The notes under the pieces are model-generated. The model had not been told where the DNA came from, ran no database searches, and saw only the letters and a list, made by a program, of their open reading frames with translations. Source: Podarcis erhardii (Eukaryota). From it: a stretch of 64,000 nt of DNA. The first letter of the stretch is position 1. Each line of letters opens with the position of its first letter. The translations under genes were made by a program, and so were the position numbers. The DNA is taken from NCBI GenBank assembly GCA_964252035.1, contig OZ176206.1, one strand, 5' to 3'. Below, piece after piece: positions 30,957 to 34,138 of this stretch.

Positions 30957-33900
30957 ATGAATTCCCAGGTGCAGCAGAACTACCACGTGGACTGTGAAGC
31001 TGCTGTTAACCATATGGTGAACCTGGAGCTCCATGCCAGTTACGTCTATCTTTCCATGGTACCTGCTTGCTTTTTTATCTCTCTTGTGCTTTGAGGGAGC
31101 ACCACCAGAGAGAAGCCCCTTTGCCTTATGCATGTCAAATGGCCTCATGTGTGCCGTTGCAGGGGGCTGAGAGTTGTGTCACCCAAGTCTGTTTTAAGTG
31201 AACATTTCATGGGGCTGGTGCCAAAAGCATCACTCAGCAGTGGCTGGTGCTTGGTGGGATGGAAAGCAGGGAGGTCAGCAGCAGGTGGCGCTAGAGCGAA
31301 TGTCAAGCAAAGCCAACAAACACTAGTTTTGTCCCTACCCTTCTCCTCCCTGTTGAGTTCTACAAGGGCAAGGAGGAGGAGGAGGAGGAAGCTGGCAAGC
31401 AGTGCCATAGCCTGGACTTGTTCCATGTCAGAAGGCAGGAAGGTGTGGGTAGTCTGAGAGCAGACCGAAGTTGGCGTGGCAGTGCTGCATTCACCCCCAT
31501 GGACCAGATTCCACTGGCATGATAGCTGGTTGGATCTGGTCACACAGGAAGGCACAGAAGAGAGCCTGCAGACAGGCAGTGATTACCTGGAGCAACAAAG
31601 ATATATGAAATCAGGGCCACTGTAGTCATCATGCAGCTACCCTCTCACTGGCATTGACTGTAAGCACATGGTGGCAGCGGGCATGTTGAGTGGGGGGCGG
31701 GTCCAGCAAGAGTTGGGGAATCTCCTCAACGTTGGTGTTGGCCCTGCCTGAAATCCAAACACTGTTTCTCCCATGAATCATATTTGCAACTCCCAACATT
31801 TTAAGCAAAGCTACTGTTGATCCCGGGTATGGCAGTTAGTGTCCCCTATTTCCTGTCACGGGTCAGGTCAAAGTGTAAAGGCTGAGCCATTTCCCTGGGC
31901 TGCTTTAGCATAACAGCCTTGTTAACAACAACAGATGCATCATAATAAAGACTGAACAGTTTTGCCAATATTGACATTGATTTATAATTCTTTAGATTTT
32001 AAGAGACCGGCTGGAATTGTCAGAAAATTCTAACACTTGCCAATGGAGTGTTCTCAGTGAATGGTCAAATTTCATGCTCTCTTCCATGTTTTAGCAGCAA
32101 AGAACTAAGAAAGCCGCCAGGCACCTTTGCCTAAACCTGATCCACAGATGGTTGAAACAGCAGCTGAATTGCTGTATAGTCCGCTTAATGGATGACTGGA
32201 CTTTTTTGTTTTTCTCCCCCTCCCTGACCTCAGTACTACTACTTCAGCCGTGATGATGTTGCCCTCAAGCATGTAGCTACATTCTTGAAAGAGGAATCAC
32301 TCAAGAAGAGGGGATATGCAGAGATGTTATTGAAATACCAGAACAAGCGAGGGGGGTGCATTGTTCTTCAAGACATTCAGGTGTGTGGTGTCTGCTTTCT
32401 TGATTAAAGTAGTCAGCAATTGAGGCAAACTAGTCCATTGCCTGTGGTGCCACAATCAGGACATCAGCCTCTGTTTGGTTTACCAGTGTCAGGATGTCTA
32501 TCTATATGCTTGTATCTTTTATTTTATTTTGCTTTTTAAAATTAAAAAATAGTCTTTTCACATGGAATAAACATACTTTAAAATACAATAAACTAAGACA
32601 GCATCAGCAAATCTCTTGTTCCTTGGAAAAAGGTGTAACAGCAGCTTGAAGCTGGAACCACTACTTAGAACCCATTCATAATGTATTTTAAAGACTCTAA
32701 TCCACTAGGTCTTTCCAGATGTTTCTGTGGGGCTGGGCAGATTGTCTTGACTGATGGTTACATCTCAAATGGGAGATGGATGGATTCTATATGTTGTAGA
32801 AGGATGAGGAACTTATATTGCCCTTGTCCTGGTTACAGACTACACCTGAGCACATACCATGAGTCTATTGTCAGGCCTGTTGCAGAGCACCAAAATTTAG
32901 CTATTTCTAAATAAGTGGCTACCAGCAACAGTGCCAACATTGCCCAATGAGATAAATGTTGATTTGATTCATTTATTATTCCTAGCAAGGCTAACAAAGG
33001 CGTTGGATTTATATTACAGATTAATCTGATTTCTTCAAAGACTGCTGACCAAAAGCAGAACACCTTGTCACGGCACCACCAAAGATGGATGATGTCTATC
33101 TATATGCTTGTTGATACTCCCAAAGAACTCCGATAGGAAATTAGGGCAAGGCCTGTCTTGCTAACCCAATTTGTCTTCGGCCTCTCCTTAACAGAAGCCG
33201 GAGCAGGATGAGTGGCAGTCCAGCCTTGAAGCCTTCCAGAGTGCCCTGCGGCTGGAAGGAAAGGTGAACCAAGGTCTCCTGGACTTACACAAGCTGGCTC
33301 TGGAGAAGGAGGATCCTCATGTATGTCACCCGTGGTTAGTGAGCAAAATTAAAATTAAAAAATGGGTAGACATTTGGAAAGAATGGAGGACCCTGAAAAG
33401 GCACTAAAAAGCTCATTCTAGTCACCTGGTGCCCTCTGGATTTTTGGAGTACAACTTCCACCAGCCTCCAGTCAGCATTGCCATGCAAGTCTGGGCTGAT
33501 GGGAGTTGCAGCCCAAACCAACTGGAGGGCACCGGGTGGGTGAAGGCTACACTAGAATCTCTAAACAAAACATGTAGACCAGGAGCTGGCCCAACATTCA
33601 GAGACAGGCAGCCCCCTTGGAAAGACCATTTCATATTCTCAAATATTGGCTTCAGCCAATGACAGCTCAGGCAGAAGCCTTTCCCAGCCACACTATGATA
33701 ATACACAAGATCACATTCATGAGTGAACTTGGGCCCTGGGCCCTTGAGCCTTTTAAAGCAGGTGCTTCACCCCTGAGCTATGAGCCCTCTGCTCGCAGCA
33801 CTCGTCTTATCTAGTATCAAAGCCTTTGATCATTCAAAATCTCCTTTTTTTCTGAGCTAGCAGATCCCAGATGTGATGAGGATGATCTGGGTTGGGACTC

Positions 33901-34138
33901 ACCACCAGTGACTGTTTCAAAAGAAAAGGAAGTGCAAGCCCTGAGCAATTCTTCTCCCCCCTTGCTTGCCTTCCCTGTGCAGCTGTGTCACTTTCTAAAG
34001 TCTCAGTTTTTGGAGGAACAAGTGGAGGCCATCAAGCAGTTGGCAGACCATCTATCTAACTTGAGGCGCTTGGGCGTGCCCCAGGATGGCTTGGGAGAGC
34101 ACCTCTTTGACAAGCTCACCCTGGGGGCGTGCAGCTGA
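30957..34138 (+). CDS. Ferritin subunit paralog (M/H'-like, catalytically atypical), 176 aa; exons 30957-31058, 32234-32380, 33195-33320, 33983-34138
   Basis: [34 protein letters not shown] | [49 protein letters not shown] | [42 protein letters not shown] | [51 protein letters not shown]; exon sizes 102/147/126/156 nt, all phase 0 with GT/AG, matching vertebrate ferritin gene structure. Confidence 0.93.
31235..31516. mobile_element. Non-autonomous DNA-transposon-like repeat, copy 2 (ferritin intron 1)
   Basis: Similar to 29655-29920; begins with CAG...TGG and ends in CCACTG. Confidence 0.65.
32514..33090 (-). mobile_element. 5'-truncated L1 (ORF2 C-terminus plus 3' tail) in ferritin intron 2
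   Basis: Minus frame [20 protein letters not shown]...LLALLG...IAKFW; flanked by the perfect 21-bp direct repeat GATGTCTATCTATATGCTTGT (32493-32513, 33091-33111). Confidence 0.8.

Follow-up and report, generated by a model that had tools for sequence, protein, structure and literature searches.

We analyzed a 64,000-nucleotide stretch of the genome of the lizard Podarcis erhardii (contig OZ176206.1 of assembly GCA_964252035.1; hereafter the window), which carries a four-exon ferritin gene on its plus strand between ZBTB8A and archease (ZBTB8OS). We consider it likely, with a probability of roughly 70%, that this gene is functional, being the lacertid ortholog of a ferritin paralog confined to squamates, and that it encodes a conserved, non-catalytic subunit free of control by iron regulatory proteins (IRPs). 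Ferritin biology is usually described through H and M chains, which are catalytic, and L chains, which nucleate, every one of them controlled by IRPs through the iron-responsive element (IRE). As we read its history, the gene would have descended from the tetrapod lineage of 176-residue, frog-H/M-type ferritins through a sauropsid expansion that gave rise to a squamate paralog, and it would already have lain between ZBTB8A and ZBTB8OS when geckos split off. Alone, its product would be incapable of oxidizing iron; most likely it would co-assemble with H-type subunits into 24-mers and alter how the mixed cage handles iron. The leader contains no canonical IRE, and synthesis of the subunit would be uncoupled from IRPs and from iron.

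Gene structure, iron-handling residues and leader

The original prediction, made from the letters of the window, proposed four phase-0 exons with GT/AG splice sites, and its coordinates, exon sizes and splice sites were all reproduced. The coding part of exon 1 (30957-31058; 102 nt, 34 codons) runs from the ATG to ...YVYLSM, is followed by a GT donor, and is the same at 34 of 34 residues in Podarcis muralis. Exon 2 (32234-32380; 147 nt, 49 codons) contains an altered ferroxidase and nucleation stretch with K61, K62, G64 and Y65 (human H-chain numbering, used for all residue positions here). Exon 3 (33195-33320; 126 nt, 42 codons) keeps E107, and exon 4 (33983-34138; 156 nt, 51 codons plus TGA) holds the changes H131 and K134 in the three-fold channel, along with F137, H168 and a retained Q141. 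Every internal exon edge is preceded by AG or followed by GT at phase 0, the window contains no N, and the joined 531 nt encode an uninterrupted 176-residue protein ending in TGA. An AATAAA polyadenylation signal is found at 34195-34200, 57 nt 3' of the stop codon.

We searched Pfam exon by exon and found that Ferritin (PF00210) matched exon 2 (E value 1e-5), exon 3 (E value 4e-5) and, more weakly, exon 4 (E value 0.0045), with no PF00210 match for the 34-residue exon 1. Exons 2 and 4 matched more than 200 solved ferritin chains (best E values 1e-14 to 1e-16). The protein belongs to PF00210 and is predicted to form the four-helix bundle with a short fifth helix. An AlphaFold2 monomer model of the Podarcis raffonei ortholog, which has 4 differences from the window protein, places helices at residues 11-38, 46-72, 93-120, 124-154 and 161-171 with a predicted local distance difference test score of 90.7, and its template modeling scores against reviewed ferritins are 0.93-0.96; the model predicts that the ferritin fold is intact. 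The net charge of the window protein, -6, is ordinary for ferritins, and a look-up in the ESM Atlas returned generic ferritin clusters only.

The iron-handling residues of the protein are unusual. The canonical H/M-type ferroxidase center consists of E27, Y34, E61, E62, H65, E107 and Q141; at these positions the window protein has E, Y, K, K, Y, E and Q, leaving the center incomplete, with three of its five metal ligands replaced (E61K, E62K and H65Y). The acidic ring of the three-fold channel, through which iron enters, is reversed in charge, the canonical D131 and E134 being H and K. Position 64, canonically E, is G, and both nucleation residues, E61 and E64, are therefore lost. Only E57 and E67 remain of the L-type carboxylate cluster (E57, E60, E61, E64 and E67), together with E58; L, K and G occupy positions 60, 61 and 64. 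In FTHL17, E62K by itself reportedly eliminates ferroxidase activity (PMC7760355). The nucleation site of human mitochondrial ferritin is made up of E61 and E64; in that protein rapid oxidation is lost with D131A, and Fe2+ delivery falls to about 40% with E134A (PMC12022971). Taken with the residue losses, these published effects suggest that a homopolymer of the window protein would neither oxidize iron fast, nor admit it efficiently, nor nucleate a core.

These substitutions are shared by the 15 squamate sequences of the clade described below. K61 is fixed, K62 and K134 are each present in 14 of the 15 members, and H65 is replaced in every member except that of Lerista; D131H is confined to lacertids. 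Relative to 100 other vertebrate sequences, the changes that are fixed or nearly so are Q58E, E61K, E62K, R79C, K86Q, E134K, Y137F, T153S and Y168H. Since the disabling substitutions are fixed across the clade, they point to an ancient functional shift rather than drift.

The leader of the squamate ferritin lacks a canonical IRE. We found no match to the Rfam models IRE_I or IRE_II at E ≤ 10 in window positions 27000-36500 or 30200-31060, and at the Podarcis, Elgaria, Paroedura, Alligator and Gopherus loci no IRE reached the gathering score. A scan for the pattern C-N5-CAG[U/A]GN-N5 with a paired stem likewise gave no match 5' of the ATG, either in the window or at these five loci. As a positive control, the IRE of a 177-residue Zootoca paralog, about 215-250 nt 5' of its ATG, was recovered by the Rfam search (IRE_I at L010:9752-9787, 50.8 bits, E value 1.6e-10) and also by the pattern scan.

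A possible relic of an IRE may be present at 30824-30846 on the plus strand of the window leader, which reads CCTTCTTGCTT-TGA-GTTGAAAGG and resembles both stem halves of the Zootoca IRE (2+2 mismatches), with the CAGUGN loop missing. Plain local alignment of the paralog IRE against the window leader gave a score of 18, which was matched by 22% of shuffles and is not significant. A two-half test applied post hoc was equalled by 17 of 2000 shuffles for the window and by 101 of 2000 for Podarcis, and it found nothing in Elgaria or Paroedura. As the plain alignment was not significant and the two-half test was post hoc, we hold this candidate relic to be tentative. A degenerate IRE half is clearer in Alligator (L003:9914-9941; 11 of 2000 shuffles).

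Orthologs, phylogeny and selection in squamates

Searching all libraries with exon 2 returned a gecko protein with the same odd ESLKKRGY stretch, and we listed orthologs by word-index searches seeded with this protein and with the Elgaria ortholog. Whole-protein searches, like the structure model, used orthologs 4-7 residues away from the window protein, or more distant ones. The gene had been described as hidden; however, it is already predicted by RefSeq or GenBank in at least 14 squamate species, where it is named "ferritin heavy chain A-like," "B-like" or "B." Because the existence of the gene is not new, what matters here is its proposed functional reinterpretation. Lacertid orthologs are 96-98% identical to the window protein, none of them fully: that of Podarcis muralis is 96% identical, and those of Zootoca, Lacerta agilis, P. 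raffonei and P. lilfordi have 4-6 differences. Identity falls to 69-80% for Elgaria (80%), skink, iguanian and gecko orthologs, and predicted orthologs are also found in Tiliqua, Lerista, Sceloporus, Phrynosoma, both Anolis species and three geckos.

In all four orthologs examined, the coding sequence spans 528 nt without the stop codon and has the same exon partition. The partition of 34, 49, 42 and 51 codons is common to the orthologs of Podarcis, Elgaria and Paroedura and recurs in paralogs from Alligator, Gopherus and Zootoca. The introns therefore belong to the family itself, which upholds the earlier claim that the gene is not a retrocopy. A processed pseudogene is ruled out by the three introns, the intact frame and a ratio of nonsynonymous to synonymous substitution rates (dN/dS) of 0.14-0.19. 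In Elgaria multicarinata, intron 1 opens with GC instead of GT (L002 10103) and the gene is 7.6 kb long owing to a 5-kb intron 2.

The genomic neighborhood is also conserved. The order ZBTB8A (a BTB zinc-finger, or BTB-ZF, gene), ferritin (plus strand), archease (minus strand) and RBBP4 is the same in Podarcis, and in the gecko Paroedura it is kept as far as archease, where the compared locus ends. The locus tags of ZBTB8A and ferritin are adjacent in Phrynosoma, and in Tiliqua, Anolis sagrei, A. carolinensis, Phrynosoma and Lerista the contigs bearing the two genes are equal in length and presumably one and the same. Neither ferritin nor archease exons occur within 10 kb downstream of ZBTB8A in the turtle Emydura or in Gavialis, and these 10 kb hence do not span the ZBTB8A-archease interval. 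At the examined spot in Falco, a ZBTB8A-like gene is followed by another BTB-ZF gene, and the ferritins of Elgaria and Alligator have no called neighbors in their 10-kb flanks. In the pit viper Protobothrops mucrosquamatus, the gap-free interval of about 2 kb between the stop codons of ZBTB8A and archease (L008 14851-16830) contains no ferritin-like sequence, and the ferritin has therefore been deleted there. No snake sequence falls in the squamate ferritin clade among the matches listed.

We built a careful maximum likelihood tree of 69 ferritins, with the root placed by assumption on FTH1-type sequences (the Euleptes 182-residue, Ambystoma and cartilaginous fish sequences). Mammalian FTL, FTMT and avian ferritoid were left out of the tree, and the relation to FTL was judged from identities. 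The window protein falls in a clade of 15 squamate sequences (support 100/99) whose branching matches the species tree, with geckos diverging first, skinks and Elgaria next, and iguanians plus lacertids last. This clade is nested in a sauropsid-only group (support 100/99), together with tandem copies from turtles, three sequences from tuatara, a second clade of squamate sequences and the 180-residue proteins of crocodilians, the last being its weakly supported sister (90/69). Amphibian H/M chains are the next relatives outside this group; further out are a separate sauropsid 177-residue group, fish M chains and the FTH1-type sequences. A quick tree of 113 rows agrees with these results. The topology suggests that the squamate clade is an offshoot of the tetrapod 176-residue, frog-H/M-type lineage that arose via a sauropsid expansion.

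Pairwise dN/dS between the window gene and its deep orthologs is 0.14-0.19 at synonymous divergences (dS) of 0.6-1.3, which indicates purifying selection since before geckos diverged; established dating puts the separation of geckos from the remaining squamates at about 200 million years. Against Podarcis, dN/dS is 0.30, a value based on just 13 differences. Of the two origins that had been offered for the gene, an old squamate duplicate is the one borne out, given the gecko-to-lacertid clade (100/99) and the synteny kept in Paroedura. A lone amniote survivor of the M lineage does not fit, as sauropsids hold many annotated 176- and 177-residue relatives, including turtle tandem clusters and the second squamate clade. 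The tree that the original prediction had called for places the gene in a squamate clade inside the sauropsid group, away from the FTH1-type sequences, and the identities speak against an ordinary FTL ortholog. Of the likeness to fish and amphibian M (H') subunits, what stands is that the nearest reviewed or solved relatives are amphibian 176-residue H/M-type chains; the likeness does not extend to function, as three ferroxidase ligands are gone whereas M chains are catalytic.

Alternative predicted isoforms exist in Lacerta agilis and P. raffonei. RefSeq variants are, as far as known, built from transcript alignments, and these isoforms, though predicted only, are an indirect hint that the squamate ferritin is expressed. 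The inferred 5' leader of the window gene (30802-30956, plus strand) starts with a short upstream open reading frame (ORF; 30802-30837), and the first exon of one predicted L. agilis isoform begins at the position equal to 30802. A GT at 30863 on the plus strand of this leader agrees with the alternative first exon of the L. agilis X2 prediction. An alternative 3' acceptor in intron 3 (33861-33911, plus strand) would give a truncated 16-residue tail that is the same as in the P. raffonei X2 prediction.

Other sauropsid ferritins showed features of their own. The Alligator gene (L003 10001-12881) has a Gavialis counterpart (P0300), and these crocodilian 180-residue ferritins carry E62H and H65Q, which makes them likely to be ferroxidase-defective as well. 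The Gavialis gene is on a different scaffold than ZBTB8A, and in Alligator there are ferritin-like fragments downstream at L003:16277-16419 and 18234-18296. The tortoise Gopherus flavomarginatus has three tandem 176-residue ferritin genes (L004 1686-5108, 10001-12768 and 15626-19766) and an extra ferritin fragment at about L004 6566-7575; none of the three genes has a canonical IRE, and two show IRE-like stems with CAGAG for CAGUG. In the tuatara Sphenodon punctatus, one of three 176-residue ferritins (P0272, UniProt A0A8D0G3V1) has E27K, E62K and H65N; the E61K and E134K of the squamate clade are absent from it, and its residues suggest a separate loss of the ferroxidase center.

The flanking genes named in the original prediction were identified from their coding exons in the window. 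ZBTB8B begins at about 6229, the ZBTB8A coding exons lie at 21836-26980 (plus strand), and minus-strand archease has exons near 40419 and 39124, the stop of its last exon being at about 36367-36369. RBBP4 begins at about 46918 (plus strand) and SYNC lies at 61267-62289 (minus strand). The BTB exon of ZBTB8A contains an IRE-like motif at 21998-22014 (C, 5 nt, CAGTGC, 5 nt, with 4 of 5 stem pairs) that is also kept in Podarcis (L001 1013) and probably arose by chance within conserved coding sequence. Two very GC-rich stretches (18200-20050 and 43000-43950) have many long, spurious ORFs in both orientations; they probably represent a CpG-island promoter belonging to ZBTB8A and the promoter that ZBTB8OS and RBBP4 share. 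Palindromic elements of about 84 nt at 28399-28482 and 35507-35590, with weaker copies at 33437-33520 and 34733-34815, resemble Rfam mir-5408 on both strands, scoring 52-62 bits against a gathering score of 90; one weak copy is inside ferritin intron 3. These are probably copies of a lizard hairpin repeat resembling a miniature inverted-repeat transposable element. An archease intron of Podarcis muralis (L001 17590-17648) contains a tRNA-like match of 34 bits that covers model positions 8-63 only and is probably derived from a short interspersed nuclear element.

Alternative explanations and meaning

The main rival explanation is that the ferritin fold was recruited to a non-storage job, with tissue-restricted, iron-independent expression. 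One model for such a role is FTHL17, a germ-cell, partly nuclear ferritin that has E62K and no ferroxidase activity (PMC7760355). Another is ferritoid, a tissue-specific partner that takes H-ferritin into the nucleus and that has been described as a ferritin-like H-chain partner in birds, which are said to lack L chains (PMC13534657). The squamate protein shares E62K with FTHL17, and its gene has given up catalysis, the nucleation residues, the carboxylates of the channel and the IRE together, yet is still under purifying selection. However, at 176 residues it has no added targeting region or N-terminal extension, its net charge of -6 is in the ordinary ferritin range and unlike that of the positive ferritoids, and no bird ferritoid-like sequence lies near it among the matches listed. 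We therefore regard recruitment to a non-storage job as rather unlikely, though it deserves more weight than either of the other alternatives. A decaying or newly dead unprocessed pseudogene, its frame open by chance, might be proposed from the loss of catalytic and channel residues, the absence of an IRE, the disappearance of the gene in one snake and the higher dN/dS against Podarcis with its few differences. This is very improbable, and conservation all but refutes it: lacertids, Elgaria, skinks, iguanians and geckos share an open frame and the same exon structure, the deep dN/dS values are low, and the substitutions that would count as disabling are fixed throughout the clade. Least credible of all is that the gene is simply the lizard's ordinary FTH1 or FTL ortholog. 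The automatic names would suggest as much, and L chains also have E62K, but the protein is far from the FTH1-type outgroup in the tree and inside the sauropsid-only group, L chains are its most distant vertebrate matches and absent from the 60 best solved chains, and its leader has no canonical IRE, unlike those of cytosolic H and L mRNAs; tree position and identities refute this reading.

Several points weigh against a non-catalytic subunit outside IRP control, which we nonetheless prefer. E27, Y34, E107 and Q141 are kept, and the protein may therefore retain some residual metal binding; the loss of activity and the co-assembly that we propose are read from residues. Unlike that of mammalian L chains, the inner surface is not rich in nucleating carboxylates, and the protein can be called L-like for catalytic inactivity only. 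The gene is dispensable in at least one lineage, since the pit viper does without it. Expression is presumed on the assumption that RefSeq isoforms reflect RNA-seq support. An overlooked upstream non-coding exon could bear an IRE, which we consider unlikely.

Beyond the gene itself, we suggest tentatively, at somewhat less than even odds, that squamates fixed their own inert ferritin class about 200 million years ago, independently of the mammalian L chain, that it may serve heteropolymeric cages as a brake or a structural diluent, or have a non-storage role, and that snakes later lost it. A subunit kept through the whole of crown-squamate history without catalysis, the nucleation pair, an acidic pore or an IRE would be a natural experiment on the role of a ferritin subunit stripped of each known iron-handling feature. 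If this is true, duplicated H/M-type ferritins would have lost catalysis repeatedly among sauropsids, given the separate ferroxidase-dead copies in crocodilians and tuatara. With these copies and the tortoise tandem cluster, the sauropsid ferritin repertoire appears richer than the H/L/M scheme, and the automatic name "ferritin heavy chain A-like/B" is misleading for the squamate clade.

Comparison with known ferritins

We found no paper describing such a squamate ferritin in the literature on ferritin with ZBTB8A, synteny, squamates, lizards or the gene family. Reptiles are stated to have M chains, and birds to have ferritoid in place of L (PMC13534657). Among reviewed and solved proteins, the amphibian 176-residue ferritins have the highest bit scores (243-248) and are like the window gene in length, short N-terminus and exon structure. 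Specifically, the top reviewed relatives are Xenopus laevis heavy chains A and B (P49948 and P17663), with 68% identity, and the bullfrog higher and middle (M) subunits (P07229 and P07798; PDB 1BG7 and 1MFR) have 64% identity. These amphibian chains retain all seven ferroxidase-center residues as well as D131 and E134, whereas the window protein has K61, K62, Y65, H131 and K134. Human and chicken H chains are 60-61% identical and L chains 56-57%.

FTL is a non-catalytic subunit, as the window protein is predicted to be, and both have Lys62 and Glu107. The pairing of these two residues is established in L chains, and it is possible in the window protein because Lys62 is present and Glu107 is kept. 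FTL is nevertheless not orthologous, being the most distant vertebrate class at 56-57% and absent from the 60 best solved chains. L chains retain E61, E64 and D131/E134, and they have extra nucleating carboxylates and a 5' IRE; unlike them, the window protein is without E61 and E64, its channel is basic, and its gene has no IRE.

FTHL17 is intronless and outside IRE control. It is a mammalian X-linked germ-cell gene, whereas the lizard gene is autosomal-syntenic with ZBTB8A, has the three ancestral introns and carries the further changes E61K, H65Y and E134K. The two have E62K in common, FTHL17 being an H-derived ferritin with no ferroxidase activity (PMC7760355). Avian ferritoid is likewise a sauropsid ferritin-like partner of the H chain, in a lineage said to lack L chains; it has a simian virus 40-type nuclear localization signal and a positive net charge (PMC13534657), both of which the window protein lacks. 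No link between the window protein and ferritoid was detected, the two being set apart by description and not by sequence alignment. Closer to hand, in the same lizard family, the Zootoca 177-residue paralog "ferritin heavy chain A" (P0170, locus L010) has an exon plan of 34, 49, 42 and 52 codons and, unlike the window gene, keeps all ferroxidase and channel residues and a textbook IRE.

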